DNA of 63,369 nucleotides from Macrostomum lignano. Its lineage: Eukaryota. Below, in pieces: positions 13,826 to 40,115 of this stretch. The translations under genes and the position numbers were made by a program. The notes beneath the pieces were generated by a model, which saw only the letters and a list, made by a program, of their open reading frames with translations, searched no databases and was not told the DNA's origin. Location: NCBI GenBank assembly GCA_002269645.1, contig NIVC01004038.1:1-63369 (forward strand), in the 5' to 3' direction. The stretch's first letter is position 1. Every line of letters starts with the position of its first letter.

Positions 13826-14829
13826 TGGGTGTTGCGATGACCGGGCTGTCCGCAGCTATAGCAGATTATAGCTCTCTTTGGCGGGCTGGCTACCTGCTGT
13901 TGGTCACGTTGCACCAGGTGATCCAGCATTCGCTGCTGCTTCTCAATCAAGTCGGTTAGAGTCAGCAAGGCTTGGGCGGTGACGTCGGGTTTCGGGTCGC
14001 CGTCCTCCTCCCCGTCCAACATCCTAACCGGGGGTTGAGCGGATCGCTGTGCCAATTCTTTAGCGCCTTCTAGTCGTCGTAGTTCTCGAATCGCAGCTAG
14101 AAGATTGTTCGGGCGAACCCAGTACAGCCGTTCTCGCAAGTCTGGCGTTGTCCGGATACCAGCGAGAAATTGATCCGCAATCTCCTTCTCGCGGTCTTCA
14201 GGGTGCATCCGAGGATACGCACGTTCACCCAGAGTTCTCAGGGCGTCAGCAAACTCTTCTGCTGACTCATTCTTGCCTTGTTGACGACGCCTCAACAGCT
14301 CTCTGTACTCATCAGCACCACCATGACGGGCAAATCGCTTAATCAGACGCTGCTTGACCTCCTCGTAGCTGGCGAAACGCGGAAGATTCATACTAAGCAA
14401 AGAAGGATATGCAGTAGCCAAATCAAGACTCGCGATGAGGTGTTGCTTCATCTCGAACGGGTCGACGATGCGCTCCATCTCGCAACGCTGCTCGAACGCG
14501 GCAAGCCAGACATGAATGTCCTGACTTGGAGTAAATTTCACAATTTTAACTTGTTTACTCACGGGCCGCTCCATCTGCTGCTGCAGAGCTGCCATCATGG
14601 TCCTCACGTCCTGGTGCATGATGTTCCGGCCGATGTTGTCCAGGCCTTGCAGAAGCTCGTCTGGCGGGTCATCGGACACGTCGCTTCTGGCACCTCGCCT
14701 CGGCGTCGGCTGCTGACCAAAGTCGTTGATCGCTGCTGCTGCTGCGGCGTCCGCTGCCGCAGGCCTCGAACTGCTGATGTGCTGATCCAGCCTGCTGCTG
14801 CACCGGCTCTCGTCTCGTTCGTTGAACAT
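13657..14829 (-). CDS. gag: Gypsy Gag (390 aa) with CCHC zinc knuckle
   Basis: CYSCGQPGHRNTQC knuckle; capsid-like QGKNESAEEFADALR segment; located immediately downstream of the PBS. Confidence 0.93.
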   Translation of the reverse strand: MFNERDESRCSSRLDQHISSSRPAAADAAAAAAINDFGQQPTPRRGARSDVSDDPPDELLQGLDNIGRNIMHQDVRTMMAALQQQMERPVSKQVKIVKFTPSQDIHVWLAAFEQRCEMERIVDPFEMKQHLIASLDLATAYPSLLSMNLPRFASYEEVKQRLIKRFARHGGADEYRELLRRRQQGKNESAEEFADALRTLGERAYPRMHPEDREKEIADQFLAGIRTTPDLRERLYWVRPNNLLAAIRELRRLEGAKELAQRSAQPPVRMLDGEEDGDPKPDVTAQALLTLTDLIEKQQRMLDHLVQRDQQQVASPPKRAIICYSCGQPGHRNTQCPMRQNQGSGQAESDNGTALHEVQAQATWQIQNGREKKRMSAAQAPMPSPTVARQ

Positions 14830-19200: not shown

Positions 19201-21103
19201 GTCATTAGCCTGATGCTTCCATACCTTCAAGAAGACAAAATTGCATGTTTCTAGCCTTTTTCTTTTATATTTAAAAAAAACAATCAAGCATTTGTTAAGT
19301 GTTGATTTTCAAGTTTTGTTTTATTATTTTTTAAACTGCTTTCCTGTGGCTTTTTTCAATAAGCAAAATGAAGGCCTATAAAATTCATATTATGGTATAG
19401 CTTTAATAAGTTGAAATTTCTGACTTTATAATATTTTTATTGCTATATACAAGTAGAAAAATGAGGCCAACTCCTCTGCTAGAGGAGAAAAGGGAAGAAC
19501 TCCTGTCACTGGAATTCCATTCCTTGAAATCCATCAGCTGAATCCCTTGACTCAAATCCCCTCATTCAATTAATCTCCAAAGAATCTCCAAAAAATCCTT
19601 TCCATAAAATTGAACATCATCAAAATCCTCTCCACAAAATAGAAATCTTTTCCATGAAACTGAAAACCATCAAAAGCCTCACCATCAAATAAAAAACAAC
19701 TCTCTGGACTTGGTGGCTAGGGTTAAGGTTAGAGCTGCTTAGAGCTATGTGTTCAAAGGTGCTGATACTATAAAAATTGAACCAAGTAAAACAATTGGTT
19801 GCACAATCAATTTCTCTGTCTGTCAGTATCAGTCTCAATTAAAGTTAACAAAATGATTGTGCAGTCTAAATCAACCCTCCAATACACAGCAACCAACCCC
19901 CTTCCACTACAGTGGCAATTAAAAATTGAAACCCCCCAACTGGTAGGGGTCAGTTGAAACCCCATTCAATCCCAAAATGTGTACAATCTTTGCAGAAAGT
20001 TAAAAGAATAGAAATTGTTTCTTTGAATGCTGTGCTTTTATTTTTCATACTTAAAGCAAAAAACTTATATTCCCAAACTCACCATTGAAAGATCTTTCTA
20101 GCAATATAAGTCTTTTCTTTGAAAGTTTAAAACTTAAGGAACAGTTTGCATTTGAACTTCCCAGTTTAAAGCATTGAATTTTTTAGTGTATATTCACTGC
20201 TTGCTACAGTGAGAGGCTTGCAAGTTTATGCATTGAATTTTACTGTTCGCCAGTTAGCAAGGGTCCAAGTGTACAAATGCAGCCACTTAAAACTCCCCAA
20301 AACCCATATTGGAGAGAAAATGCACTGCCAAGATAGGAAAAAGTTGTGGTGCAATTGCTCAAAATTGATGCAAATTTTCAGTTCAGAGCAGGAAAAGTGG
20401 CCAAAGAAGGTTAACAAACCAGTTTTCTGCTTTTTAACAGACTTAATTTAAAAAAATTCAACATTAAAATAGCCTATTTGTTGCATAGAAAAATTCTGCA
20501 TTGATATATATAAGTCCCGCATTTGAGTTGGCAGCCGTCTAAGAGGACATATGCGTTAAACCTGGTCAATCGACCAGTCTACTCAGCTTTAGATATAAAG
20601 AGAAAAACTCAATTAATATAGCATGATCACAGCTATATTGCTCATTTCAAGACTTTAAACTTTCACTTTGTCTATTTTTTACTCAAATAATATCAAAAAT
20701 AAGTCTAGATATTTTGTCTTTAAAGTGGAACAGTTTATTGAATCCCTTGTGTTATTTTTGTTTTGGGCCAAAGCTCTTGCCAATGTATGAATTTGTATAA
20801 ACACTAATTTCATTTTTCAACTGGTAGTATTGCCTAGTTTTGAATTTTTAAATCTCAGTTGGGATGCCATTTGTTTAGTTTTAAGGACTTATTGATGAGT
20901 AAAATGAAAAATATAAAAATCTGTATCAGATCTTTAAACTTATAAAATAAAAAATAGACTAATAATCTTCATAATAGTTTTTTTAAATGTTGAGTTGAGT
21001 GTTCCTTTTTCTTTGCCAATATGTTCTAATAGCCTTCCTCAAAATTGCTGGGGTGGGCTATTACTCGTACATTTGAATTCTGACTTTTCTGTTACCTAGA
21101 GCT

Positions 21104-24100
21104 ATGAGCGAAGACCACACGACAGTTGCTGAGATGCAGCCGCAGACTTCCATCTGTGCAGATGGCGATGAGGCAGCACCAGAGGGCTCATCAGCGACTC
21201 AAGAGGCAGCAGAAGAAGCGGCCGCAGAACCGGAAGTGGAAGCGGATGCAGACTCCCCACCAGTGTCGCTAAAGGTCATCTTCAATAAGCGCAAGATTGA
21301 CCTGACCTTGCCGGTCTCGGCTAAGGTCATCTCTCTGAAACGGCAGCTTCAGGAATTGACTGGCGTTCCGGTTGACATGCAGAAGCTCATGTTCAGAGGC
21401 CTCTGCCATGACGATCGGCGACTCAGTGAGCTCGGGGTCGGCGACGGTGCCAAGCTGATGCTCGTGGGCAGCACGCCGGACAGCTTGGCGTCGGTACGGC
21501 GTCAGGACGCGGCTGGCGAAGCGGCTGATGTCAGGTAGGCGATTCAGCTCGTGTGTGAGGTGGTGTGTCTGATTGTGGTCTGGCCGAGATTGGATGTGTC
21601 TGTCCGCTTGTGTCTGGTTGTGGCCTGGCCGAGATTGGATGTGTCTGTCCGCTTGTGTCCGCTTGTGTCTGGTTGTGGCCTGGCCGAAATTGGATGTGTC
21701 TGTCCGCTTGTGTCCGCTTGTGTCTGGTTGTGGCCTGGCCGATATATGATGTGTCCGTGTCTGCTTGTGGCCTGGCCGAGATTGGATGTGTCCGTCCGCT
21801 TGTGTCTGCTTGTGGCCTGGCCGAGATTGGATGTGTCCGTCCGCTTGTGTCTGCTTGTGGCCTGGCCGAGATTGGATGTGTCTGAGTCTACTTGTGTCTG
21901 GTTGTGGCCTGGCCGAGATTGGATGTGTCTGAGTCCACTTGTGTCTGGTTGTGGTCTGGCCGAGATTTGATGTGTCTGAGTCCACTTGTGTCTGCTTGTG
22001 GCCTGGCCGAGATGGGATGTGTCTGTGTCCACTTGTGTCTGGTTGTGGCCTGGCCGAGATTGGATGTGTCCGTCCGCTTGTGTCTGCTTGTGGCCTGGCC
22101 GAGATTGGATGTGTCTGAGTCTACTTGTGTCTGGTTGTGGTCTGGCCGAGATTGGATGTGTCTGAGTCCACTTGTGTCTGCTTGTGGCCTGGCCGAGATG
22201 GGATGTGTCTGTGTCCGCTTGTGTCTGGTTGTGGTCTGGCCGAGATTGGATGTGTCTGAGTCCACTTGTGTCTGGTTGTGGTCTGGCCGAGATTGGATGT
22301 GTCTGAGTCCACTTGTGTCTGCTTGTGGCCTGGCCGAGATGGGATGTGTCTGTGTCCGCTTGTGTCTGGTTGTGGTCTGGCCGAGATTGAATGTGTCTGA
22401 GTCCACTTGTGTCTGCTTGTGGTCTGGCCGAGATTGGATGTGTCTGAGTCCACTTGTGTCTGCTTGTGGCCTGGCCGAGATGGGATGTGTCTGTGTCCAC
22501 TTGTGTCTGGTTGTGGCCTGGCCGAGATTGGATGTGTCCGTCCGCTTGTGTCTGCTTGTGGCATGGCCGAGATTGGATGTGTCTGAGTCCACTTGTGTCT
22601 GGTTGTGGCCTGGCCGAGATTGGATGTGTCTGAGTCCACTTGTGTCTGCTTGTGGCCTGGCCGAGATGGGATGTGTCTGTGTCCACTTGTGTCTGGTTGT
22701 GGCCTGGCCGAGATGGGATGTGTCCGTCCGCTTGTGTCTGCTTGTGACCTGGCCGAGATTGGATGTGTCTGAGTCCACTTGTGTCTGGTTGTGGTCTGGC
22801 CGAGATTGGATGTGTCTGAGTCCACTTGTGTCTGGTTGTGGCCTGGCCGAGATTGGATGTGTCTGAGTCCACTTGTGTCTGCTTGTGGCCTGGCCGAGAT
22901 GGGATGTGTCTGTGTCCACTTGTGTCTGGTTGTGGCCTGGCCGAGATGGGATGTGTCCGTCCGCTTGTGTCTGCTTGTGACCTGGCCGAGATTGGATGTG
23001 TCTGAGTCCACTTGTGTCTGGTTGTGGTCTGGCCGAGATTTGATGTGTCTGAGTCCACTTGTGTCTGCTTGTGGCCTGGCCGAGATGGGATGTGTCTGTG
23101 TCCACTTGTGTCTGGTTGTGGCCTGGCCGAGATGGGATGTGTCTGTGTCCACTTGTGTCTGCTTGTGGCCTGGCCGAGATGGGATGTCTGTGTCCGGGTG
23201 AGCAATTTCGCTCAAACGTTGGTCCGCAGGTCGAAAGCGAACAATCCAGGCAACTCAGATGGCGCTGGCGCGGTTCGTCTGTCGCAGCGCGACCTGCACC
23301 GCCGAGTGCTGGACAAGTACGGCCGGCCGGACGACCTGACGCCCGGAATTCTCAATGCCAACTTGCCGCTGCCCCCGGCCCCGCTTAGTGGCATGTACAA
23401 TCGGCAGGGTGCCAAGGTATTTGGGGCCGTTTGACCTGAACTGCAACTAAGACTGGAGTTGTCCCACCGGCATGATAATTGCCCCTACAAAATGAGAATC
23501 ACACCCCCCCCCCAAACATAAGAATCGCCTCCCAAACATAAAAATCCCCCCAAACATGAGAATCGCCCCCCAAACATGAGAATTCCCCCCCAAAATGAAT
23601 ATGCCCCCCATGCTGAGAATGCCCTCCCCCAAACATGAGAATCGCCCCCCCCCCAACATGAGAATCGCCCCCACCAACACGAGAATCGCCCCCACCAACA
23701 CGAGAATCGCCTACACCAACACGAGAATCGCCCCCACCAACACGAGAATCGCCCCCCCCAAACACGAGAATCGCCCCCACCAAGACGAGAATCGCCACCC
23801 CAAACATGAGAATCGCCCCCACCAACACGAGAATCGCCCCCCCCAAACATGAGAATCGCCCCCACCAACACGAGAATCGCCCCCACCAACACGAGAATCG
23901 CCCCCACCAACACGAGAATCGCCCCATCAAACATGAGAATCGCCCCCACCAACACGAGAACCGCCAGCATCCGCCTGCCTGCCCGCAGGTTCGATTGACA
24001 TTCAAGCTGGAAATCGACCAGCTGTGGATCGGAACTAAGGAGCGCACCAACAAGATCCCGATGTCGTCAATCAAGCGGATAGTCAGCGAGCCCATCGAAG

Positions 24101-24219
24101 GCCAGGAGGCGCACCACATTGTCGGACTGCAGCTGGGCACCACAGAGCAGTCCATGTACTGGCTGTACTGGGTGCCCTGCCAGTACGTACGAGCTATTCA
24201 AACCACTATTGGTACTTGA
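21104..24219 (+). CDS. UBFD1: Ubiquitin domain-containing protein UBFD1 (about 282 aa); exons 21104-21534, 23230-23416, 23989-24219
   Basis: UBL domain (LKVIFNK...QKLMFRGL...LMLVGS) followed by PLSGMYN..G.KVRLTFKLE.DQLWIGTKERT...YWLYWVP, the conserved UBFD1 C-terminus; GT-AG junctions are phase-compatible. Confidence 0.93.
21560..23197. repeat. Intronic composite minisatellite (about 40-47-bp variants of CTTGTGTCTGGTTGTGGCCTGGCCGAGATTGGATGTGT)
   Basis: Tandem array filling UBFD1 intron 1; source of the 553-, 405- and 364-aa spurious ORFs. Confidence 0.95.
23480..23965. repeat. Intronic minisatellite, 21-bp unit (CACGAGAATCGCCCCCACCAA)
   Basis: Tandem array in UBFD1 intron 2. Confidence 0.93.
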
Positions 24220-24554
24220 TTTGCAGAGCTGCAAAGGTTCAACTGCATGCGCGAATGAAGGCTTTCTACTTGTTACATAGTTATGTTCCTTAGATCTACT
24301 TTCAGTTGCGTAATCATTCTGTTCCGTTCGCTCGGTAAATTATTTTTTTCTCTAATAGCGTACGCGCCCTCTGCTGTAAAACACTGCCCGAGATAAACTC
24401 TGGTCTCTATTCGCTAGGCATAATTTTTGCGGCAAGGTTTTTGCACTTTGACTGGCTGCCGCTACCCTTTGCCTACTTCAGGGGCCAAACAGTAACGATT
24501 TAAGCGCTCTGGCGAATGCTGCCTGCTGCGCTTGTGACAGAACCGCTTTCTGCT

Positions 24555-25325
24555 CAAATTCCCACATCACGGAGATCGCCCCAGTTACTCCAGAATCCTC
24601 TCCGCCACATCACGTAGATCGCCCCAGTTACTCCAGAATCCTCTCTGCTACATCACGTAGATCGCCCCAGTTACTCCAGAATCCTCTCCGCCACATCACG
24701 TAGATCGCCCCAGTTACTCCAGAATCCTCTCCGCCACATCACGTAGATCGCCCCAGTTACACCAGAATCCTCTCTGCTACATCATTGAGGTCGCCCCAGT
24801 TACTCCAGAATCCTCCTCGCCACATCACGTAGATCGCCCCAGTTACTCCAGAATCCTCTGTCTCACCGTGGAGATCTCCCCAGTTACACCAGAATCCTCT
24901 CTGCTACATCATTGAGGTCGCCCCAGTTACTCCAGAATCCTCTCTGCTACATCATTGAGGTCGCCCCAGTTACTCCAGAATCCTCTCTGCTACATCATTG
25001 AGGTCGCCCCAGTTACTCCAGAATCCTCTCTGCTAAATCATTGAGGTCGCCCCAGTTACTCCAGAATCCTCTCTGCTACATAATTGAGGTCGCCCCAGTT
25101 ACTCCAGAATCCTCTCTGCTACATCATTGAGGTCGCCCCAGTTACTCCAGAATTCTCTCTGCTACATCATTGAGGTCGCCCCAGTTACTCCAGAATCCTC
25201 TCTGCTACATCATTGAGGTCGCCCCAGTTACACCAGAATCCTCTCTGCTACATCATTGAGGTCGCCCCAGTTACTCCAGAATCCTCTCTGCTACATCATT
25301 GAGGTCGCCCCAGTTACTCCAAAAT
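24555..25325. repeat. Intergenic minisatellite, 43-bp unit (TCGCCCCAGTTACTCCAGAATCCTCTCTGCTACATCATTGAGG)
   Basis: Direct periodicity of 43 nt. Confidence 0.95.
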
Positions 25326-26321
25326 CCTTTGTCACACCGTGGACTTTATACAAAGTTAAATTTTCTGAGCACAAAAGTGTCCCAGACCACCTGTGTTCAT
25401 TGTTTAATGCGCTCTCATTTGTAACTCGCCTGTCCACTATCCATTGCAGTCCTTCTAATGCTTACGTTTCGCCAATTTTATTCAAGGGCTAACTTCGAAG
25501 CTCCTCAGTTGAAATTGTTGGTTCTGGTGCAACCGCTTTCTCATTTCAATTTCCCAACTTGGGAACTGAAGTACGCGAATTTATTTTCTTGATTTGGTAG
25601 TTTTCGGAGCTCTAGTGAGTTTGCTTTAGTGCGTTACTACTATTTTGTGCAGGCTTGTCAGTAGTATGCTCAACTTAATCAAGCCCAGGTGCGCCCAGAC
25701 AAGTGTAATATTGAGCGGCCAGTGCGGTTGGCACCTGCTAGCTGGCGGTGATTTTCATATGCATTCTCGCCGATTATGGTCAGTTTACTGTTTCTTTAAT
25801 AAAAGCAGACATTGCTTGTTCTTGTGGTTTTGCCAATTCTTTCGTATTTTTTGTTTTACTTTTGGCTCCCATCTCTAGTCTGTGCATACAATTCTAGGGG
25901 TCCTAGGCTCGAACTCTTATGTTGTCAATTGAATTGTCAAAGGTCAAAGCTCGATACTATAGCTACTAATACTAGTTTTAGGAGGTCATTGGTTCGATGT
26001 CTATTCTGGCCATACAATATTTAAAGGTCCTTCCCTCTTTCTCTCTCGAGTCGAGTCCTGCGGATTCTCGAGGCCTTTTTGCCCGGTCTCCAGCTTTGTC
26101 TTGGCTCATAGTTGCCCCATATCTTGCCTCAAGATTCACCTGCCGAAGTCCTGGGCTCTTTATTAGAGGCAGGGGGGTTGTGTGCACCCTGGCGCACTTT
26201 AAGCGACATAGGCACACAACCGGCGAGAGGCATTACTGCCCATTCCGCCGACTCCCCTGAGCAGGCATACAAGCGCGCGGATACGTACGCAGGCACACAC
26301 TCTCACAGGAGAGCGGCCCTA

Positions 26322-26512
26322 ACTTTATATTATCGTTAGGCATGTACACTTCACTGCGCCTTGGGGGGTTGGCTCTCAAGGCCGTTAATTGCACGAGCAA
26401 AGCCAAGCCGAGATTCCAATTCACCCCCAAATTAATGTGACTGCACTTGGAATTGAGCCTGGGTTGCTGGCACACCAGAGCAGCTGCGCTAGACCGCTGG
26501 GCTACGGCCCCC
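26322..26512 (-). mobile_element. tRNA-derived SINE, family A copy 1
   Basis: Minus strand starts GGGGCCGTAGCCCAGCGG (A box) and contains CAGGCTCAATTCC (B-box-like); related copies at 50228-50415 and 51631-51679. Confidence 0.75.
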
Positions 26513-26574
26513 TCGAGATCCTGGCCTCGATCTCATCGAATATTCTGGCACGCGATTTTCAGCAGTCCATCCTC

Positions 26575-28003
26575 ATGCGAAGTCGAGATCGGCGCCCAGC
26601 TTTACAGGTGGCCTCCATACAGCAGTCTGGCCATGATGCGGCTGAGGAGGCTACGCCCGCCTGCCCGCTGCACGGCCCCATGCTCGCCCTGGTGTTGCGC
26701 GACGGCGCCGGTCGATTCACCCGGCGCCACTGCTGCTCCTTCACCAGGCGGCCTGGCGCCTGCTCGGCCGAGTCCGGCGCGGCCTCCGCCTTGTCAGCGC
26801 CGAACTGCTGCCGCTTGGACGAAGCCCTCGCCACGCCGCGCCGGCTGCGCGCCTACTGCCTGGACTGCGGCCGGCTGGCACTCGGCAGCTCCGAGCTGGC
26901 GGCCTGCGCCACCCACCGGCTGCTGCCGCGGCTACCGAGGCGGCGCCTGCTGGCCCCCACCGGCTTCCTGCCGGCGCTCACCGCCCGGCAGTCCTCGCAG
27001 TACTTCTTCTCCCCGCCCAGCCTGGCCTACCTGCTCCGCCTGGTGCGCCGCCTCCGCTGCCGGCAGCTCGTCTGCGTCGGCTGCCCCCGCCTGCACGAGG
27101 CCGCCCGCTACGCCATCGGCGGCCGGCGCTGCCGCAGCCTCCTGCTTGACGCCGACCTGCGGTTAACCGAATTCTTCCCCGACTCTCTGGCCTTCAACAT
27201 GTTCAACGCCGCGTTCCTGCGACCGGGTGGGCGAGACAGATTCGTCAGCTGGCTGGCGGCCAAGCGGGGCTTGGACTCCGTCTGCCTCATTGTGGCTGAC
27301 CCGCCCTTTGGCGGCCTGCTGACCCCCTTGATGGACTGCCTGCAGCACCTGGCAGATCTCGCCGCGGCTGCCGGCCACTGCGAGGTGGGAAACTCTTGTT
27401 TTCACCTGACCTATCAGATCTGTCTCACCTGTCCTATCAGATCTGTCTCACCTGTCCTATCAGATCTGTCTCACCTGTCCTATCAGATCTGTCTCACCTC
27501 TCCTATCAGATCTGTCTCACCTGTCCTATCAGATCTGTCTCACCTGTCCTATCAGATCTGTCTCACCTGTCCTATCAGATCTGTCTCACCTGTCCTATTC
27601 ACAGCAACCGAGCGCCAACCCCTCCCCGCATTCCCGGCAGGTGTTCACAGCCGTGGCGGCGCCCTACTACCTGGGCAAGCGGTGGCTGCGGCCCCGGCTT
27701 AGCCTGCACGACTGCCAGCTGAGTTACGCCAATCACGCCAAGCTGCGCAGCGCCTCGGTCTCTGCCGTCCGCCTGTTCTCCAACGTGCCCGAGTCCCGCC
27801 TGCCGCCGCCTCCCGGCACCAGCTGGTGCCCCGTCTGCGCCCGCCACTCGGCCCACTGGAATCCGCATTGTGCAGCCTGCGGCACGTGCGCCACGGTGCA
27901 CCCGCCTGCCCGGCTGCACTGCCAGAGCTGCAACAGATGCGTCAAGGCCAAGTATATCGACTCCCACGACTGCCGGTCTGGCTTGTCGGCGAAGGAGAAC
28001 TGA
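26575..28003 (+). CDS. ZCCHC4: rRNA N6-adenosine methyltransferase ZCCHC4 (about 390 aa); exons 26575-27384, 27641-28003
   Basis: N-terminal CPLHGP zinc finger; QYFF..; VCVGCPRLHE; LLLDAD; FNMFN; catalytic DPPFGG; VRLFSN; Cys-rich C-terminus (C..C...N.HC..CG.C); phase-0 intron. Confidence 0.9.
27404..27598. repeat. Intronic minisatellite, 23-bp unit (TGTCTCACCTGTCCTATCAGATC)
   Basis: Tandem array in the ZCCHC4 intron. Confidence 0.93.
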
Positions 28004-28159
28004 GCTGCTTACAGAGATGCATTTGCTTGCGATGAAGAAATCTGCTCTGTACATTTCTGATGCACTTGAAACTGCCAGAATGCACCGTGCTCAATCTTCT
28101 TGAAGTCTAAACATCTTCGTTTTCTGTTTTGCTTTCTTTGTTACTTCCCAAGTTCGTAG

Positions 28160-28682
28160 GAAACTGCTGCTACCCCTCCATGTCACCTGAGTAGGCTGCT
28201 GCTACCGCTCCATGTCACCTGAGTAGGCTGCTGCTACCCCTCCATGTCACTTGTTTAGGATGCTGCTTCCCTTCCCTGACACTTGAGTAGGCTGCTGCTT
28301 CCCTTCCCTGACACTTGAGTAGGCTGCTGCTTCCCTGACACTTGAGTAGGCTGCTGCTTCCCTGACACTTGAGTAGGCTGCTGCTTCCCTGTCACTTGAG
28401 TAGGCTGCTGCTTCCCTTCCCTGTCACTTGAGTAGGCTGCTGCTTCCCTTCCCTGACACTTGAGTAGGCTACTGCTTCCCTGTCACTTGAGTAGGCTGCT
28501 GCTTCCCTTCCCTGACACTTGAGTAGGCTGCTGCTTCCCTTCCCTGACACTTGAGTAGGCTGCTGCTTCCCTTACACTTGAGTAGGCTGCTGCTTCCCTG
28601 ACACTTGAGTAGGCTGCTGCTTCCCTTCCCTGACACTTGAGTAGGCTGCTGCTTCCCTGTCACTTGAGTAGGCTGCTGCTTC
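28160..28682. repeat. Intergenic minisatellite, 27-32-bp unit (CACTTGAGTAGGCTGCTGCTTCCC[TTCCC]TGA)
   Basis: Tandem array between ZCCHC4 and CSTF2. Confidence 0.93.
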
Positions 28683-28737
28683 CGAAGTCCTTGAGCTGGC
28701 CTTATCTCACAAGCTCACCTAATCACGGATCGCTATA

Positions 28738-28754
28738 ACTCAATTTATTGCATG
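28738..28754 (+). other. Genomically encoded 3' end of a flatworm spliced leader (ACTCAATTTATTGCATG), ending on the CSTF2 ATG
   Basis: The 17-mer is seen directly. Its identity to the Macrostomum lignano SL 3' end (...GCGAAGACTCAATTTATTGCATG) is from memory and needs verification. Confidence 0.75.
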
Positions 28755-30581
28755 CAATCCAAAATGGCAGCCCCAGGCCCCCAGCAACTGCAGCAGCAGC
28801 AGCAGCAAATGCTTCAGCAGCAGCAAGCCGCGGCTGACAGGCAAAGCCAAGGCCAGCGCGAGCGCGAGGCCCTGGAGCGGACCGCCCGCTCCATATTCGT
28901 TGGCAACATCCCCTACGAAGCGTCTGAGGACCGGCTGAAGGAGATGTTCGAGCAGGCCGGGCCCGTCATCGGCTTCCGCCTCGTGTATGACAGGGAGACC
29001 GGCAAGCCCAAGGGCTACGGCTTCTGCGAGTACAAGGACCTGCCTACCGCCCAGGCTGCCCTGCGCAATCTGCAGAATATCGAGTTCTGCGGCAGGCCGC
29101 TGCGCATCGGCCCGGCCGCTGGCGAGCAGAACCAGCAGCAGCAGCAGCAACAGCAGGACGGCCAGGGCCATGGCCCCGGCGTCTCCGGCCCGCCAGTGGA
29201 CTCGCCTTATGGGGAGAAGGTGGGAGCGGGAGCTCTTGGGATTCTGTATGCTGTAGGGAGGGATAAGCGGCAGTGGATGTGGACACAGGGAAGGGGGTAA
29301 GGGACAAAAAAGGATAAGGGTCAGGGAAGGGGGTAAAGGACAAAAAAGGGATAAGGGTCAGGGAAGGGGATAAGGGATGAAAAAGGGATAAGGATCAGGG
29401 AAGGGGAAAAGGGACAAAAAAGGATAAGGGTCAGGGAAGGGGATAAGGGACAAAAAAGGGATAAGGGTCAGGGAAGGGGATAAGGGATGAAAAAGGGATA
29501 AGGATCAGGGAAGGGGATAAGGGACAAAAAAGGGATAAGGGTCAGGGAAGGGGATAAGGGACAAAAAAGGGATAAGGATCAGGGAAGGGGATAAGGGATG
29601 AAAAAGGGATAAGGATCAGGGAAGGGGATAAGGGATGAAAAAGGGATAAGGATCAGGGAAGGGGATAAGGGATAAAAAAGGGATAAGGATCAGGGAAGGG
29701 GATAAGGGATGAAAAAGGGATAAGGATCAGGGAAGAGGATAAGGGACAGGGAAGGGAATAAGGGACAGGGAAGGAGATTAGGGAGAAGGAAGGGGATAAA
29801 GGACAAGGAAGGGTACATGTTAAGCAAGAGGGAGGTGATAAGCGAGATGAGTGAAAAGCTGGGATAAGAAACAACAATGTAAATTCAGGTAAAAAGCCAA
29901 CCCCAAATCGCCCAGGTGGACCCAAAGAACGCGCCGGAGGAGATCAGCCGGGCGGTTGCCAGCCTGCCGCCCGAGCAGATGTTCGAGCTGATGCGTCAGA
30001 TGAAGCAGTGCATTCAGAACAACCCGCACGAGGCCCGCAACATGCTGCTGCAGAACCCACAGCTGGCCTACGCCCTGCTGCAGGCTCAGATTGTGATGAA
30101 GCTGGTTGACCCCAAGGTGGCCATCGCTATGCTGAGCAGAACCACTGAGCAGATTCCGCCCGTAATGCCAGTCGATCAGCCAATGCAGCAGCAGCAGCAG
30201 CACTACCAGCACCAGCCGCCTCAGCCTCCGCAGCCTCCGATGCAGCAGCAGATGTACCACCATCACCAACCGCCGCCGCCTCCGCCACCACAACATCAGC
30301 AGCAGATGTACCCGCAGCAGCAGCAGCAGCAGCCGTACCGCCAGCCGCCACCGCCGCCGCCGCCCCAGGCGCAGCCGCAGCAACCGCAGCAGCCGCAGTC
30401 TTCGCAGGGCAGCGGCGCTCAGCTGTCGATGGGCGCCATCGCCGGCGGAGATCAGGAGAAGGCGGCGCTCATCATGCAGGTGCTGCAGCTGTCAGATGAG
30501 CAAATCCACATGCTGCCTGAGGACCAGCGCCGGTCCATTATGATTCTTAAAGAGCAGCTGGCCAAGGCTGGTCACATCTGA
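28752..30581 (+). CDS. CSTF2: Cleavage stimulation factor 64-kDa subunit (about 377 aa); exons 28752-29219, 29916-30581
   Basis: RRM (SIFVGNIPYE...KPKGYGFCEY); hinge (ISRAVASLPPEQMFELMRQMK...QNPQLAYALLQAQ); C-terminal EKAALIMQVLQLSDEQI.MLP..QR.SI.ILKEQ; phase-0 intron. Confidence 0.96.
29297..29790. repeat. Intronic purine-rich minisatellite (about 34-35 bp; GGGATAAGGGACAAAAAAGGGATAAGGGTCAGGGAAG)
   Basis: Tandem GGG-rich array in the CSTF2 intron. Confidence 0.92.
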
Positions 30582-30892
30582 CTCAATGTGTGCTCATTGC
30601 CGCTGTCATTTATTCACTCTGGTTTAGTGCCGGCTTAGGCATCAGGCATTGTTCCTGCTGATCTCTGCTGGTGTTCCGGTACTGGCTGGCTACTAGTAAA
30701 CTGTTGATAGGACAATGCAAAAGCTAATCAACTCTGCTGTCATTCTGTAATGTTTGCTACTCAATGACTGTTCAATATGATCAATTAAAATGTTCCTGTG
30801 CAAAATATTTTTGGCTTCTGGGTTTCAGTGTTCGTTTTTTACCGAGTGTGCATATCAGAAGCTGTTTGCATCAGGTTGCCGCCTTGTCCTTG

Positions 30893-31067
30893 TCCTTCAG
30901 TGAGCTGCTGCACCCCTCTCTCGATCCTTCAGTGAGCTGCTGCACCCCTCTCTCAATCATTCAGTGAGCTGCTGCACCCCTCTCTCAATCATTCAGTGAG
31001 CTGCTGCACCCCTCTCTCAATCCTTCAGTGAGCTGCTGCACCCCTCTCTCAATCATTCAGTGAGCTG
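30893..31067. repeat. Intergenic minisatellite, 32-bp unit (TCAGTGAGCTGCTGCACCCCTCTCTCAATCAT)
   Basis: About 5 tandem copies between CSTF2 and RBM7. Confidence 0.9.
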
Positions 31068-31168
31068 TTACCTGTTACATCCTGATCCTAGTCCTTCAGA
31101 AAGCAGTCCCCAAGTATCTCAAAGCATTCACAATGGTGCATTTTACTTTTGCAGCGTTTCTGGACTTC

Positions 31169-32498
31169 ATGGACGACAATAGCCGCGAGAGAACCCTGTG
31201 GGTTGGCAACCTGGGCCCCGATGTGACTGCGGACCTGCTCACCGAGCTCTTCCTGCAGTCCGGCCCGCTCGAGTGTCCCGTGAAACTCGTGGCCGGCAAG
31301 GATGGCAAAAATGGCTACGCGTTCGTCACCTTCAAACACGAGGAGTCGGTGCTCTATGCCTGCCGCCTGTTTAGGGTGAGTGGCGTCTGCCAGATGCCGT
31401 GGCACAGGCAGTGATGCAAGTAGTGTCACTGGCAGTGATGCAAGTAGTGTCACAGACTGATGCAAGTAGTGTCACAGACAGTGATGCAAGTAGTGTCACA
31501 GACAGTGATGCAAGTAGTGTCACAGGCAGTGATGCAAGTGTCACAGACAGTGATGCAAGTGTCACAGACAGTGATGCAAGTGTCACAGACAGTGATGCAA
31601 GTGTCACAGACAGTGATGCAAGTGTCACTGGCAGTGATGCAAGTAGTGTCACAGACAGTGATGCAAGTAGTGTCACAGACAGTGATGCAAGTAGTGTCAC
31701 AGACAGTGATGCAAGTAGTGTCACAGGCAGTGATGCAAGTGTCACAGGCAGTGATGCAAGTAGTGTCACAAGTAGTGAGTATTGTATAGAGAGACTGTCA
31801 CAGGTAGTGAGTATTATTACAGATACTGTCACAGGTAGTGAGTATTATTACAGATACTGTCACAAGTAGTGAGTATTATTACAGATACTGTCACAGGTAG
31901 TGGGTATTATTACAGATACTGTCACAGGTAGTGGGTATTATTACAGATACTGTCACAGGTTAGTTGAGCTCACCCACCATCCTGTCATCTTGTTGCGCAG
32001 AGTTTGCGCCTGTGCGGCGCCGAACTCCTCGTGAAGCCGCGCCAGGGCAGCGGCCACGAGCGCCAGTGGCAGGAGATTCTGCCGACAGAGCGGCTGGCCG
32101 ACCGGGAACGGGCCGACAGAGCCGCTCGGGAGGCCCGCAGCGACCACCGGCGGCAGCATCAGCGCCACCGCCAGCTTCCGCAGCCTCCGATGCCGCCGCC
32201 GCCCCCGCCAAGCTTCCCTCTCCTGCCTCCGCCGCAGCTGCCGCAACATCAGCGCCAGCATCAGCAAGCTGGCAACTTTCTGCTGCCGCCGCCACCGCCG
32301 CTCCCTCCGCCAGTTGTTCACCACCAGCAGCACCATCATCAGCAGCATCATCAGCACCACCAGCATCAGCAGCACCAGCAACATCACCAGCAGCATCATC
32401 AGAATCAGCGCCACCATCAGCAGCACGGCATTAAGCGATCAACCAGCGACAGCGGATTCAACAGCCACTATGGCCGAAATAAGCAGGCCCGATTTTAA
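31169..32498 (+). CDS. RBM7: RBM7/RBM11-family RRM protein (about 234 aa); exons 31169-31375, 32001-32498
   Basis: RTLWVGNL...VT..LL.ELFLQSGP...YAFVTFKHEESV.YA..LF..LRL.G..L.VKPRQGSGH matches the RBM7 RRM; Q/H/P-rich tail; strong upstream acceptor TTTTACTTTTGCAG at 31141-31154. Confidence 0.85.
31405..31960. repeat. Two adjacent intronic minisatellites (21/24-bp GCAGTGATGCAAGT[AGT]GTCACAG; 31-bp CTGTCACAGGTAGTGAGTATTATTACAGATA)
   Basis: Tandem arrays in the RBM7 intron. Confidence 0.92.
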
Positions 32499-32844
32499 AC
32501 AATACGGTTGCCCATACGAGCTAACGACAGATGAAAAATATATTCGCGTCGGGGTTCCTGGATCGATCAATATTGATTTTTCTCAGTCTGCGATGCATTT
32601 GAGCAGCTTTTTTTGTTTCTTAATTTTAGTTTCAGCTTTGAATAGCTCGTAAATAATGTGCATCAATTTGCTTGTAAACAGTTTTTCACTGGGCACTGTA
32701 AGCAGTGCGCTCCTTCTGTCTACTATAAGTACTGTACTAAGTGATTGTTTCTCTCTTGTAAAAATTCCGGTGCTTTTATGAAGCTAAATTGATGACGGTG
32801 CTGGCTTGTATTTTTATATGCATATGCTTACTAGATTATACTCA

Positions 32845-33128
32845 ACCTGAGGCTAGATAAACACTCCCTCTCAAGTCTCAGGTAAACATTCTGTCTCAGG
32901 CTAGGTAAACACTATCTGAGGCTAGGTAAACACTCAATCTCAGGCTTGGTAAACACTATCTGAGGCTAGGTAAACACTCAATCTCAGGCTTGGTAACCAC
33001 TTTATCTCAGGCTTGGTAAACACTATCTGAAGCTAGGCAAACACTTCATCTCAGGCTTGGTAAACTCTATCTGAAGCTAGGTAAACACTATCTGAAGCTA
33101 GGCAAACTTTTTATCCGGCTAGGTAAGT
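32845..33128. repeat. Minisatellite upstream of NUBP2 (about 21-23-bp alternating units with CTAGGTAAAC)
   Basis: Tandem array ending in CTAGGTAAGT. Confidence 0.88.
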
Positions 33129-33172
33129 GCCTCATATTTTTGCAAGACAGACAGCCAACCTCGCTGCAATTG

Positions 33173-34164
33173 ATGATGTCCGAAGGCAGCAGCGGTCCCC
33201 GGATCGACACGGCTCTTCTGGTCCTGTCCGGTAAAGGCGGCGTCGGAAAGTCGACAGTCAGCGTGCAGCTGGCGCTGGCCCTGGCACAGGCGGGCCACAG
33301 GGTCGGCCTGCTTGACATCGACCTGTGCGGGCCCAGTGTGCCGCGAATGCTGGGTCTGGAGGGCCAGCGGGTTCACCAGTGCCCGGAGGGCTGGGTGCCG
33401 GTGCACCTGAGGCTGCCCGGAGCTGCCTCAGACGGCGCCGAACTCCTAGTCATGTCGATCGGCTTCCTGTTGGAAGGTCGAGACGATCCAGTGATTTGGC
33501 GGGGCCCGAAGAAGACCAGCATGGTGGGCCAGTTTGTGCGGGATGTGCACTGGCAGCGGCTGGACTACCTGGTGGTAAGTGGCAGCACTGCAGTAGTGTG
33601 GGGTTCAGCAGTGTCAGATTGAGCAGTCAGCAGTGTCAGATCGAGCAGTCGGCAGTGTCAGATCGAGCAGTCGGCAGTGTCAGCCTCCACCCTATTCCCG
33701 GCCCATCCCAGGTGGACACACCTCCGGGAACCACGGACGAGCACCTGGCAGTGCTGGAGGCGCTACCAGTCGGCTCGGCCTGCCGCAGGCGCGGCGCGGT
33801 GGCCGTCACGACGCCGCAAATCGTGGCCGTCGGCGACGTCCGCCGCGAGCTGGACTTCTGCGCCAAGACGGGCCTCGCCGTGCTGGGCATCGTGGAGAAC
33901 ATGAGCGGCTTCGCCTGCCCGCACTGCGCCGGCTGCAGCAACCCGTTCTCCAGTGGCGGCGGCCGCGAGCTCGCCAGGGCCAAGGCGCTGCCCTTCCTCG
34001 GCTGCCTGCCGATCGACCCCAGCCTGGCGGCCTGTCTGGACGAAGGCCAGGCGGCCGGCGCCAAGGCGCTGTCGTCGCCAGCTCAGCTACTGGCGCAGGA
34101 GGTGGCAACCAGACTGAGGGAGCAGCTGGATAGGGAGGCGGCTGCTGGTGGGGACCAGGCCTAG
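33173..34164 (+). CDS. NUBP2: Cytosolic Fe-S cluster assembly factor NUBP2/Cfd1 (about 284 aa); exons 33173-33574, 33712-34164
   Basis: Deviant Walker [11 protein letters not shown]; DIDLCGPS; VIWRGPKK; VDTPPGT.DEH; VTTPQ; ENMSGF.CPHC; lacks the N-terminal Cys cluster of NUBP1. Confidence 0.95.
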
Positions 34165-34194
34165 CTAATCTGCGACTCTGTGCGACTGTAGACA

Positions 34195-34320
34195 GATCCT
34201 CAAGTGCTGGGCCAGCCTCCCAGATCCTCAGTTGCTGGTCTCAAGCCTCCCAGATCCTCAGTTGCTGGTCTCAAGCCTCCCAGATCCTCAGTTGCTGGGC
34301 CCTAACCTCTCAGATCCTCA
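34195..34320. repeat. Short minisatellite (about 30-bp CCCAGATCCTCAGTTGCTGGTCTCAAGCCT)
   Basis: About 4 tandem copies downstream of NUBP2. Confidence 0.85.
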
Positions 34321-34883
34321 TTCACACCAATGGTTGCCCATCAGTGAGATCTGTTTTTTTGTAACGCAGCCGCACAGCTGAGCTAATTTAAACTCGTAGT
34401 TTTGGCTTTGGAACCCACAGCACTTGCAGTTGGCGCACTTTGATAACATTGCTTCGGTGCATTTGAGGAGACTGAAAACCCAGCTCCTAGCTGGAGATCG
34501 ACTTGGTTTCAATACTTATTCTGAATTATCCTTGGCATCTGTAGTTTATTCTGCTTGTTGATTGATTTCGCTCGCAGATTCTATTGCCATCATTTCATTG
34601 ATTGCTATCCATGCCGACTGCTTCTGCCTTCAGGCATCAAGTTTCTTTGATTGTTTAATTTTAACATTTCGTTAATTAATAAAATATCTTCAACTTTCTG
34701 ATTTACATGTACGCATTACGCCACTTATGACGTCATTTTTTGATAAGTAGTATGCAACTAGTTCAAAAGAATCTGCCTTTTATGGAGTCAAATTCATTGT
34801 TAAATAAGCTGATCAGAGATGCAGTAAAGACTACTTTATCGGCTGCGTACATGCATATGGTGTAAATACTAGCATATTGGTTG

Positions 34884-36706
34884 TCATAGCAACACAGTAT
34901 CTGCTGCCAGCCAAGCAGTTGCCAGGGCGGCTGCTATCCAGTAGTAGACTGCTGCAGCACTGGTGCCGCCGGCTGCGGGCTCTGCGGCCAGCATGAGGCC
35001 GGCCTGCAGCTTGGGGGCCGCCTGGCCAGAGTTGCAGCCGGGGTGCCGGCACACTCGCTCGTACTCGAACATCGGGTAGTTGCGGCCGTACACCGAGCTG
35101 GCGTGCGGCATGCAGTCGGCGAGGTACATCGCCGACTCGAACGCCCGACCGTTGTACTTGATCTGCCGAGTCAGCTGCTGAAGGGGAGAATCGGGAGGGG
35201 CAATTAGCACTGTTGTTCGATGATCTTCCATGCAGCCATCCGCTTCCACGCTGAATCTTTAATATCGGAGTACTTTGAACTATGGCATATTGGCACTCTG
35301 GTCAATGTTGGTTTTAGCTACTAATAGTAGTTCAAACAGTAGCGAGCCTTTTACCACTTCCTTATCACCACTGCCCGCTGCTATCAGCGCTGGAAGCCGC
35401 TTGATTCGCATTGCGGTGATTTATGCCAGCTGATAAAGGCTGGCACACTGCATGTACAGCTGACTGCCGCTGAGTTCCAGTCATGTGCGTGTGGCTGCCA
35501 AGCCACTGCTAATGAATGCTGGCCCTATTAAGGATTTTTTTCGCCTTCATCGCGCGGACTTGTTTTAGTTCCAGCTCGAAGTTTTTTGAAAAACATTCTG
35601 GGCGGCGCCGTTGCGCAGTTTTTGCCGGCTTTTCCAGAGCTGACAGCGCCAGCGAATAGTTGAACTGCAGTGGTGGGTTGCGGGGGAGCCCGCCTGCTGT
35701 CTTCACTGTTGGGGCCTTCCTCGACCGCTAATGGCGATGGCGCATGCACTTCAGTTTGTTTGAAATTCAGCGTTTTTTATTATTAGTTTTGGGAGCCGTT
35801 AGCGCTGCGTTGGTTCGTTAGCGCGTCTTTAACTGCTGAACTGGGCCGGGTTGCTTCACAAGACGGAATTCGAGTTGCGGTGGGGTTGGAGCTTCGAAAT
35901 TGAGTTTAGGTTTAATGAGACCCTTGAAACGCACCTTGATGTGACTCGACAGCCAGACGAATGGACGGACACACAGACAGACCCACGGACAGATCGACAG
36001 ACACTAAGACAGACAGACAGACAGACCGACAGATGCAAACAGAGACAGGTGACAGGCAGTTGCAGACAAGATAGGATGAGAAAGTACATGTACTCAATGA
36101 GGCGCCTGGAAGCTTGCGCAGGCAGTTCATGCACATCATACTGTTAGAGCCAAGCAGCCACTCCGCAAGTGCAAACCTCTCTTCTAAAGCGGCTTTTAAA
36201 ACGCATCGCGATTCGCGAAAGCAAACTTTTAAAGAAGTTGGGTTTATCGTACAGCCTGTTGACATCCTCTCGACATCAAAGAGCAACAGGATGAACAAAG
36301 CTTCTGGCCACTAGGAATGTGAAAGCGGCAGAAGAGCTGCTCCTAAAAGTGACCGAAGGAGACAAGCCTAGCCTACACGTCCAGCACAGCTTTCCTTTTT
36401 GCTTCCTGACAATGCAGATTTACATGACTACTCTGGCTTTCACGTCTCTGACCGCGGCTCTGCGTACTATGCGTTCTACCAGATGTAACTAGGCAGCGAC
36501 TGAAGCATGCGTTGGGTGGCCTGGGGGCTGCCGTGACGGGAGACAGCAGTTGGCGCTGGGCTGTCAGCAGTGCGTAGGCGAGGGTGAGGGAGACGCCAGG
36601 AGGACATGAGAGAGAGAGCAGTGTGCAGTGAGACTATATCTATCTATCTGACGTCTGTCTGTCTATCTATCTATCTATCAATCTATCTATCTATCTATCT
36701 ATCTAA

Positions 36707-36778
<72 letters not shown>

Positions 36779-38920
36779 TCATCCACCCCAACTGCAGCCC
36801 AGCTCACAGCTAGCAGGCACACCGGTGTCTGCACCAGTTTCCCGCCTGCCCTGCTGTCATTGACTGCGTTTGTCAGCTCCAGGACTCTGTCGCTGCACGG
36901 CTGCAGCTGGAACTGGTCGATGCGGCGGCCGTGGCCAACCCAGCAGTGCAGCCGGCGCCGCGCCCCCGTCTCGCCGCTGCCCAGCCAGTTGTTGTTGCAG
37001 CCGCTGCTGTTGCAGTACATGGTAGTGCGGGCGTTGAACATCAGCGAGGCAAAGTCTGGCAGCTGCGAGCCGCCGCCGGAGGAGCGCTGGCAGCTCCGGG
37101 CCGCGTGCACGATTGTGCTGCTGGCGTCCTGGAGGAACGCCACCTGCCATTTGGATGATTCAGTTTGCAACGTAGTGGAAATTATGGCCGATCACGAAAC
37201 GCAACCCAATTCAAGAGCCGTGACCGAAGCCTGCCCAAAAGCATAATCTTTCCTCTGATTCCTAAAGTTAAAGTCTGTAGACTTACATTAAAGCCCAAAA
37301 ACCATCAACTCTGAAACAACTATGGACCCAAGCCCCTGAACCCAAGCCCCTGAACCCAAGCCCCTAAACCCAAGCCCCTGAACCCAAGCCCCTAAACCCA
37401 AGCCCCTGAACCCAAGCCCCTAAACCCAAGCCCCTAAACCCAAGCCCCTAAACCCAAGCCCCTGGACCCAAGCCCCTAAACCCAAGCCCCTGAACCCAAG
37501 CCCCTGGACCCAAGCCCCTGAACCCAAGCCCCTGAACCCAAGCCCCTGAACCCAAGCCCCTGAACCCAAGCCCCTAAACCCAAGCCCCAAACCCAAGCCC
37601 CTGAACCCAAGCCCCTAAACCCAAGCCCCAAACCCAAGCCCCTGAACCCAAGCCCCTAAACCCAAGCCCCTGAACCCAAGCCCCTGAACCCAAGCCCCTA
37701 AACCCAAGCCCCTGAACCCAAGCCCATGAACCCAAGCCCCTGAACCCAAGCCCATGAACCCAAGCCCCTAAACCCAAGCCCCTAAACCCAAGCCCATGAA
37801 CCCAAGCCCCTAAACCCAAGCCCCTAAACCCAAGCCCCAAACCCAAGCCCCTGAACCCAAGCCCCTGAACCCCCCTGAGCCCAAGCCCCTAAACCCAAGC
37901 CCCTAAACCCCCCTGAGCCCAAGCCCCTAAACCCAAGCCCCTAAACCCAAGCCCCCAAACCCAAGCCCCTGGACCCAAGCCCCTAAACCCAAGCCCCTGA
38001 ACCCAAGCCCCTAAACCCAAGCCCCAAACCCAAGCCCCTGAACCCAAGCCCCTGAACCCAAGCCCCTGAACCCAAGCCCCTAAACCCAAGCCCCTGAACC
38101 CAAGCCCATGAACCCAAGCCCCTGAACCCAAGCCCATGAACCCAAGCCCCTAAACCCAAGCCCCTAAACCCAAGCCCATGAACCCAAGCCCCTAAACCCA
38201 AGCCCCTAAACCCAAGCCCCAAACCCAAGCCCCTGAACCAAAGCCCCTGAACCCCCCTGAGCCCAAGCCCCTAAACCCAAGCCCCTAAACCCCCCTGAGC
38301 CCAAGCCCCTAAACCCAAGCCCCTAAACCCAAGCCCCTGAACCCAAGCCCTTGAACCCGAATTGCCGCAATCCAGCAGGCCTCACCTTGCAGGCGTGGCC
38401 GTCACCGCAGGGCTCCAGGCGCACGCGCCGGCCAGAGGCGCAGTCCGGGTTGTTCAGCGGCATGGCCATGTGCTTGTAGAACACGCAGGAGAGGCAGCTC
38501 AGAGGATCGTTCGATGCCGAAGCAGCTGCTGGTTGGAGAAGCCACTCAGTTTGATTAATTGATAAATAATAAATGGAAGATATACCCTGTAGCTATACAA
38601 TTCAAGCCAAAGAAATATTTTAGCAAAAAATAACAAAGCTCTTGAAACTCTAGAAGCGAATTTTCGTTTCTTAGAAATTAGGTGCCTCTTTTCTAACACT
38701 GAAATTTCGAGTTTGAGACAGTGTCCCAGAATCAAGAGTAAGAATTCTCAATGGCTACTAAACAAAATTATCAATGCACTGGAAGTATTGAGTCACAGAG
38801 ATATGCAGCCTCAAGCTTCATAGCCTGATGAAGATTCTGAGGCACAGCCTCACCTGAACACGAGCTGCAGAGGAAGACCAGCAGAAGCAGAAGCACAAGC
38901 AGACTCCGCCGACTCTTCAT
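34884..38920 (-). CDS. Secreted, putatively GPI-anchored protein with two Ly6/uPAR (three-finger)-like domains (about 279 aa); exons 38920-38854, 38528-38386, 37143-36808, 35177-34884
   Basis: Signal-peptide exon MKSRRSLLVLLLLLVFLCSSCS; LSCLSC...CNSSGCN and LHC...VCRHPGCN domains; hydrophobic C-terminal tail; all four exons join with GT-AG in compatible phases. Confidence 0.8.
36640..36777. repeat. (ATCT)n microsatellite
   Basis: Direct. Confidence 0.97.
37326..38357. repeat. Intronic minisatellite, about 14-bp unit (AACCCAAGCCCCT[A/G]), telomere-like C/G skew
   Basis: Tandem array in intron 2 of the Ly6-like gene. Confidence 0.95.
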
Positions 38921-39499
38921 CGTGACCGGCCTGCCAAGGGAAATCAAAAATGCTCAAGCTTTGATCTGCATGGGTCTGCGGTTCAGGCTTGAATGAGACA
39001 GGCTCACTGAATAGCCGCCAGCTCGCGACAGTCAAAGACCTGAGAGGCATGCATTAGGCAGTCAGATGCCAAACTGCAGGGCTGGGGCGGGTGGAGACGG
39101 GCAGACAGAGGTTAGATAGCTAGGCCAAGTTTGAGTTTCTTGAGCACTTCAAGCGGGTGGAGACGAGGTGGCTTAAGGTTTTCTAGCGTTAGAATGCTGC
39201 GCCGCTCCGCCTGCACCTGGGCCGCCTTCTCTCTGCCCCTGACTTGCTCAGCTGACCGGGCCACAATTGCGTCTGGAGTTTCTGGCCCGGCAAGTGCGCG
39301 CTTATTATGTGCTCGACCTGAGCTGCCTTCTCTGAGCAGAGCAGGCACTCCGGTATCAGAGCGAAAATTTAAATAAAATACTCAGCGCTTTCTTCTGGTG
39401 TACACTTGGAGCATTTGGGATTGTAGGGCGCTCGTGCACTGATTGCTGGGGCACCTAGCTCTGACCAGCGATAATTCTACGAGTATATATCCATGCCGC

Positions 39500-40115
39500 T
39501 CACACCGGCACTCCTGACACCTCACATTGGCACTCCTGACACCTCACACCGGCACTCCTGACACTTCACCTCGGCGTTCCTGACACCTCACATAGGAACT
39601 CTTGACACCTCACATCTCTGACACAGTATAGGCATATCTGACACAGTATAGGCATATCTGACACAGTATAGGCATATCTGACACAGTATAGGCATATCTG
39701 ACACAGTATAGGCATATCTGACACAGTATAGGCATATCTGACACAGTATAGGCATATCTGACACAGTATAGGCATATCTGACACAGTATAGGCATATCTG
39801 ACACAGTATAGGCATATCTGACACAGTATAGGCATATCTGACACAGTATAGGCATATCTGACACAGTATAGGCATATCTGACACAGTAAAGGCATATCTG
39901 ACACAGTATAGGCATATCTGACACAGTAAAGGCATATCTGACACAGTATAGGCATATCTGACACAGTATAGGCAAATCTGACACAGTAAAGGCATATCTG
40001 ACACAGTATAGGCAAATCTGACACAGTATAGGCATATCTGACACAGTATAGGCATATCTGACACAGTATAGGCATATCTGACACAGTATAGGCTTATCTG
40101 ACACAGTATAGGCAT
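39500..40115. repeat. Minisatellites: short CTCCTGACACCTCACA array followed by a 20-bp unit (ACACAGTATAGGCATATCTG) x about 25
   Basis: Direct periodicity. Confidence 0.95.

Follow-up and report, generated by a model that had tools for sequence, protein, structure and literature searches.

Spliced-leader sequence over a trans-splice acceptor in the Macrostomum lignano assembly is probably a polishing artefact

Introduction

How does the 3' end of the spliced leader (SL) of the flatworm Macrostomum lignano come to stand, base for base, against the first exon of a protein-coding gene in the genome assembly? The initial annotation of this locus, at the start of CSTF2, saw a relic leader left by an SL-capped mRNA that had been reverse-transcribed and then retroposed or gene-converted back into the genome. 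By aligning the gene with two paralogous copies in the same assembly and weighing each route by which leader sequence could have arrived, we find that the SL tail is probably an artefact of consensus polishing of Mlig_3_7 rather than worm DNA.

Results

An SL tail abuts the first exon of CSTF2

The window, the whole 63,369-nucleotide stretch of DNA analysed here, is the contig that carries PAA48844.1, BOX15_Mlig006421g2 (gene Mlig006421.g2, hereafter g2), in assembly GCA_002269645.1 (Mlig_3_7). The gene encodes CSTF2, a protein comprising RRM, hinge and C-terminal domains, whose nearest database entry is BOX15_Mlig006421 of M. lignano. On the forward strand, exon 1 runs from the trans-splice junction (28755-29219) and includes the native ATG at 28764 and the RRM domain; the sole GT..AG intron (29220-29915), which contains a 37-nt satellite at 29286-29813, lies at the same position in g2 and in the paralogs g1 and g3; and exon 2 (29916-30581) encodes the hinge and C-terminal domains up to a TGA stop. 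Upstream of the gene, a satellite with 27/32/59-nt units (28164-28683, forward strand) recurs at the corresponding position of each of the three paralogous contigs and is separated from the SL tail by 54 nt of unique sequence.

The SL tail itself is the 17-mer ACTCAATTTATTGCATG at 28738-28754 on the forward strand. Aligned to the published 35-nt SL of M. lignano, CGGTCTCTTACTGCGAAGACTCAATTTATTGCATG (PMC8629364), it matches the 3' end at 17 of 17 positions and ends at the SL/exon junction, confirming that the leader had been correctly recognized from sequence alone. No other site in the window matches, even with up to three mismatches tolerated, and the chance expectation of an exact 17-mer in a window of this length is about 7e-6. 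The ATG that closes the tail (28752-28754) is, as first reported, in frame with the CAA TCC AAA ATG GCA of CSTF2.

Neither chance nor a piece broken from an SL RNA gene is a tenable origin, since either would account for the 17-mer itself and for nothing more. The sequence following the ATG is CAATCC instead of a GTAAG donor, and the lack of any GT donor there refutes an SL RNA gene fragment, judged by the published features of SL RNA genes (PMC8629364). The 5' half of the SL (18 nt) was not found in the window, and neither an SL RNA family nor an Sm-site structure was called in it, the sole Rfam match being a tRNA. This tRNA-Val (CAC) gene lies at 55535-55607 on the forward strand.

Shorter SL-suffix matches of 6-8 nt occur at chance frequency in the window and both paralogous loci. 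Those at 19247 and 40923 were rejected as non-coding AT-rich sequence, and one at 39048 on the reverse strand because it amounts to two non-nested transitions relative to the g3 locus. The string GAAGACAAAATTGCATG at 19225-19247 (forward strand) is similar to the SL (GAAGAC...ATTGCATG) but for an internal deletion; surrounded by AT-rich non-coding sequence and flanked by neither a donor site nor a gene start, it is probably due to chance. At the protein level, a padded profile of the SL-encoded peptide VSYCEDSIYCM returned no database protein sharing three 5-residue words, so that annotated proteins show no sign of a complete SL in frame. This negative carries little weight, since gene models are cut at the trans-splice site during annotation. 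A search with the exon-1 open reading frame, with and without the SL-derived Met, found no independent DNA or RNA contigs, and its protein matches were only UniRef fragments of ML2 gene models, all without the 5' end. One member of an ENA cluster, P0125, proved to be an unrelated metagenome contig.

A paralog retains the acceptor where the SL tail stops

The paralogs g1 and g3 lie on NIVC01003158.1 (locus L001) and NIVC01000741.1 (locus L002), both in Mlig_3_7, and the neighbouring genes are the same in all three copies: a ubiquitin-domain gene, an N6-adenine methylase-like gene, CSTF2, an RRM gene and a NUBP/ParA-like gene. In the gap-free three-copy alignment, the g1 start of CSTF2 reads ...GCGCTATAACTC TGTTGAATTTCAG/CAATCCAAAATGG, with the stroke marking the splice junction, whereas g2 and g3 both read ...GCTATAACTC AATTTATTGCATG CAATCCAAAATGG. 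The g1 acceptor, TTTCAG/CAATCC, falls exactly where the SL tail stops in g2 and g3 and conforms to the published trans-splice acceptor motif [T/C]TNCAG. It also supplies the parental-type paralog with AG/CAATCCAAAATG that the initial annotation had predicted. Only 13 of the 17 nucleotides distinguish g2 from g1: the block AATTTATTGCATG (28742-28754, forward strand) stands in place of the g1 outron end TGTTGAATTTCAG, 13 nt for 13 nt and gap-free, with eight of 13 positions mismatched, the AG acceptor lost and the difference starting exactly at the splice junction. The remaining four, ACTC (28738-28741, forward strand), form the 5' border of the overlay and are common to the outron of g1, g2 and g3 and, in the same register, to the SL.

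Because g1 has its acceptor at the junction, the g2 and g3 state is the derived one, and it carries the exact splice junction of the mRNA. Judged from sequence, the final 13 nt of the outron have been overwritten, whether in vivo or in silico, with spliced-mRNA sequence that includes the SL/exon junction. In the alignment behind this comparison, one paralog or both can be matched to about 18.7 kb of the window, and both to about 12 kb; across those 18.7 kb the 13-nt block is the sole dense gap-free block of mismatches outside satellites and indel-ambiguous stretches. Beyond the block, the three CSTF2 loci differ by scattered SNPs and repeat-copy number; G at 28698 and T at 28731 are copy-specific, and C at 28886 and T at 28901 are specific to g2/g3. 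The g2 and g3 coding sequences differ at ten synonymous and no non-synonymous codons, and both are therefore functional genes. If the tail were DNA of the worm, neither would have a [T/C]TNCAG acceptor. The earlier statement that CSTF2 has no acceptor just upstream thus holds for the consensus motif and fails for weak AGs, which are present at 28695, 28707 and 28713.

The same alignment disposes of retroposition, in which a 5'-truncated cDNA of an SL-capped CSTF2 mRNA would have landed at a new locus and gained its intron later. An SL fragment abutting the first exon base is what such a processed copy would show. However, the upstream satellite, the unique outron, the intron in its content and its position at the same codon, the 3' untranslated region, the downstream satellite and the downstream genes are all colinear with the acceptor-bearing g1, and at the CSTF2 copies we found neither a poly(A) tract after the 3' untranslated region nor a target-site duplication. 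The three-way alignment therefore refutes a retroposed CSTF2 copy, to which we assign next to no probability. Two further supports of that reading fall with it. The near intron-less structure had been linked to retroposition, with a parental paralog expected to have more introns, and g1 has the same single intron. In addition, CACGGATCGCTATA, once taken for a decayed 5' part of the leader, belongs to the unique outron at 28684-28737 (forward strand), which g1 and g3 share with 1-2 SNPs in the three-copy alignment; g1 carries CACGGAGCGCTATA upstream of its intact acceptor, which makes the element ordinary outron (CACGGA[T/G]CGCTATA). Of the original interpretation, the SL origin of the block and the existence of a parental-type paralog stand; retroposition is refuted, together with the argument from introns and the supposed remnant of a decayed leader.

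Several features of the surrounding region can be recorded here. Compared with L001 and L002, positions 20000-39600 form a block of 5-6 genes present in three copies on separate contigs; unique sequence in the aligned blocks is about 97-99% identical, and whole blocks with satellites and indels are 91-99% identical. A block in three copies is in keeping with what is known of the DV1 line, namely hidden polyploidy and duplication of the large chromosome. Four different satellites of 24-59 nt (28164-28683, 29286-29813, 30896-31067 and 31399-31960) lie between and inside the cluster genes at the same positions in the three contigs, with varying copy number, and one of them fills the CSTF2 intron. 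The likely CSTF2 poly(A) signal (window 30784-30790; L001 about 12031) is AATTAAA in g2 and g3 versus AATAAA in g1. Deposited coding-sequence starts of the three CSTF2 copies and of the NUBP-like gene of L002 (window 28758; L001 10001; L002 10001 and 15141) lie 3-9 nt 3' of the trans-splice junctions placed here, so annotated 5' ends in Mlig_3_7 are not base-exact. Two of the CSTF2 entries are titled 'partial', and the NUBP-like coding sequence of L002 begins at a non-ATG codon.

Forced alignment of SL-bearing reads would produce the block

The way in which Mlig_3_7 was built offers a route by which mRNA sequence could enter the consensus. Canu contigs from PacBio reads went through Pilon polishing that drew on Illumina DNA reads as well as on RNA-seq reads mapped with STAR (the passage ends '2.5.2b'; PMC5730564), so the consensus is RNA-seq-corrected. 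The same authors ran STAR with --alignEndsType EndToEnd for transcriptome mapping (PMC5730564). Trans-splicing affects about 30-39% of the genes of M. lignano (PMC8629364, PMC5730564), so untrimmed RNA-seq libraries are rich in reads that start inside the SL. At CSTF2, forced alignment of such reads over the junction would stack SL bases as in-register mismatches on the end of the outron, where they would outvote the DNA reads, and Pilon, voting per base, would then swap each differing base. The overlay would halt where SL-bearing reads no longer align, with eight mismatches in 17 nt followed by further mismatches at -18 and -19. In that case an AG acceptor would persist in the true g2 and g3 loci, and CSTF2 would simply be trans-spliced there.

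Forced end-to-end reads combined with a per-base vote predict substitutions only, equal length, a start at the junction, an extent that is upstream only and a locus otherwise unchanged. The block at CSTF2 is an equal-length, in-register, substitution-only block that starts at the junction, and it lacks the hallmarks of reverse-transcription-mediated insertion. The position of its far end can be examined through the mismatch cost of laying k SL bases over the g1 outron, which is 8 at k = 13-17, 9 at 18, 10 at 19-20 and 11 at 21; the cost stays flat at 8 over k = 13-17 as the ACTC match is free. Costs of 8-10 fit the usual STAR mismatch caps, the settings of the polishing run being unpublished. 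Moreover, the in-register likeness of the g1 outron end to the SL is unusually high, with 9 of 17 positions matching (P = 0.012). This likeness would make the site more prone to overwriting than a typical acceptor and, together with the mismatch costs, would explain why the site is affected and where the overlay ends.

Several considerations restrict this explanation. In the default local mode of STAR, the SL would be soft-clipped at the CSTF2 site, where the cumulative score never exceeds +1, and the artefact therefore needs an end-to-end setting in the polishing run. That EndToEnd was set in the polishing run itself is plausible; the paper states the mode for transcriptome mapping only. Against an artefact, the acceptor of the RRM gene, TTTTACTTYTGCAG/CGTTTC, is intact in the three copies and CSTF2 is untouched in g1, which means that the artefact is not universal and needs copy- and gene-specific ratios of RNA to DNA reads. 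Also on that side, no A-run was seen hard-wired after the likely CSTF2 poly(A) site, and g2 and g3 share the block and yet differ at nearby SNPs, a pattern equally expected from one ancestral event; with three copies and no outgroup, phylogeny cannot separate a shared ancestral event from parallel polishing.

Overwriting in the animal is less likely

The rival that deserves most weight is a real conversion in place, in which a cDNA of the CSTF2 mRNA, or the trans-spliced mRNA itself, served as template in the ancestor of g2 and g3 and overwrote the acceptor with 13-17 nt of SL. On its 5' side the tract would have been joined at the ACTC microhomology, and on its 3' side it would have ended within exon 1, hence the retained intron. 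We consider this unlikely, although several observations are in its favour: the exact mRNA junction is carried; a parental-type paralog with AG/CAATCC exists in g1; the tract is bordered by a 4-nt microhomology (ACTC) on the 5' side and by exon 1 on the 3' side; and a block common to two contigs whose nearby SNPs differ fits a single ancestral event. The machinery may also be at hand, given that the window contains an apparently intact Ty3/gypsy element with reverse transcriptase (8528-14829) and that partial leaders have been reported at LTR and LINE loci of flatworm genomes (PMC12582326). On the reverse strand, this LTR retrotransposon of the Ty3/gypsy type comprises a gag open reading frame with a zinc knuckle (13657-14829), one with reverse transcriptase and RNase H (10853-13825) and one with integrase (8528-10765).

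On the other side, equal length and perfect register are unexpected from a microhomology join, the tract must be confined to a very short stretch at the far 5' end, and two gene copies under purifying selection would each have lost their only consensus acceptor. The assembly pipeline is the simpler, documented route. We therefore judge an origin in vivo to be less likely than one in silico, and prefer the polishing artefact as the explanation of the SL tail.

A candidate second overlay at the NUBP/ParA-like gene

A second start codon in the cluster bears on the choice between the two. Immediately before the ATG of the NUBP/ParA-like gene (33176), positions 33170-33175 on the forward strand hold a possible further SL overlay, reading TTGATG in the window, TGCATG in L002 and TTGCTG in L001. 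The longer sequence at this start is GCAATTGATG in the window, GCAATGCATG in L002 and GCAATTGCTG in L001, and the adjacent variable columns are TGA in the window (33170-33178), GCA in L002 (15126-15134) and TGC in L001 (15838-15846). On these sequences, the site is suggestive of the SL suffix TGCATG written over TTGCAG/ATG, which would likewise conform to the acceptor consensus, to a depth of 3 nt in the window, 6 nt in L002 and 2 nt in L001. Such an overlay yields a doubled ATG ATG in the window and L002. The order of the copies by depth is that seen at CSTF2, with L001 shallowest (0 at CSTF2) and the window and L002 deeper (13-17 there).

We scanned both strands of the aligned region for nested overlays with at least three variable columns per site; a looser scan was uninformative, as sites with only two variable columns match by chance. 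The true SL gave two sites, both at gene 5' ends (CSTF2 and the NUBP-like gene). Among 2000 random or shuffled 17-mers, the mean was 0.14 sites, about 12% gave at least one site and 2.7% gave at least two. With a control 17-mer yielding a site as often as this (about 12%), the NUBP-like site taken alone is only suggestive. Recurrence at other trans-splice sites is limited to this nested case, the RRM acceptor being untouched, among about five comparable gene starts. Depths that differ by copy would come naturally from per-base voting; in vivo, the 2/3/6-nt grading at the NUBP-like start would require several further independent events, which counts against conversion in place.

Discussion

The two surviving explanations differ in what they would mean. 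If the SL tail is an artefact, it is a practical warning, since Mlig_3_7 is the reference assembly of a widely used flatworm model and may hold SL tails over trans-splice acceptors at expressed genes. Acceptor-motif statistics would be blurred, false upstream ATGs would appear, and the design of promoters and 5' untranslated regions for transgenes would be misled. The [T/C]TNCAG motif is present at only 9,551 of 21,754 annotated trans-splice sites (PMC8629364). If the tail is real, an animal gene bears an 'SL scar' formed in situ, and the AUG supplied by the SL has become fixed as an in-frame start upstream. CSTF2 would then be the first host gene of an animal in which RNA-to-DNA overwriting had struck a trans-splice site in situ, and the tail would be direct evidence of RNA-templated repair in a flatworm germ line.

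Among known systems, the relict DinoSL retrogenes of dinoflagellates (Slamovits & Keeling 2008; PMC5585692, PMC6050394) resemble the CSTF2 copies in that the genomic SL abuts the first transcribed base and is often 5'-truncated. DinoSL retrogenes are retroposed and intron-poor, sit at new sites, often carry stacked relict SLs and have been confirmed in genomic reads. At CSTF2, by contrast, the locus, intron and flanks are unchanged, 13 nt differ, and the tail is known from the assembly alone. Measured against what marks a relict-SL retrogene, the SL abuts the first exon base, but the intron has not been lost and a new genomic site, with unrelated flanks, a poly(A) remnant and a target-site duplication, is absent. 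Within M. lignano, the ML2 assembly contains a mis-assigned 'SL RNA' at the 5' end of Mlig013257.g1 (PMC8629364), which, compared by its description, is likewise an SL adjoining a trans-spliced protein-coding gene.

In parasitic flatworms, partial SLs outside SL RNA genes have been reported at LTR and LINE loci and read as traces of trans-spliced transcripts (PMC12582326); relic leaders are thus not without precedent in flatworms, where the initial annotation knew of none, and the SL here is likewise partial. Those leaders, however, lie in mobile elements that integrate via reverse transcription, whereas CSTF2 is a single-copy-type host gene at its resident locus.

In yeast, cDNA-mediated gene conversion and break repair templated by transcript RNA replace the sequence of a resident locus with that of a processed RNA. 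These conversions usually remove introns and are 3'-biased, whereas CSTF2 keeps an intron 465 nt downstream and has its tract at the extreme 5' end. To our knowledge, SL tails introduced into an assembly by polishing, of which CSTF2 would be an instance, have not been described in print. The behaviour this would draw on is familiar: Pilon, given forced end-to-end alignments, overwrites by substitution only and in register where many reads share a non-genomic end.
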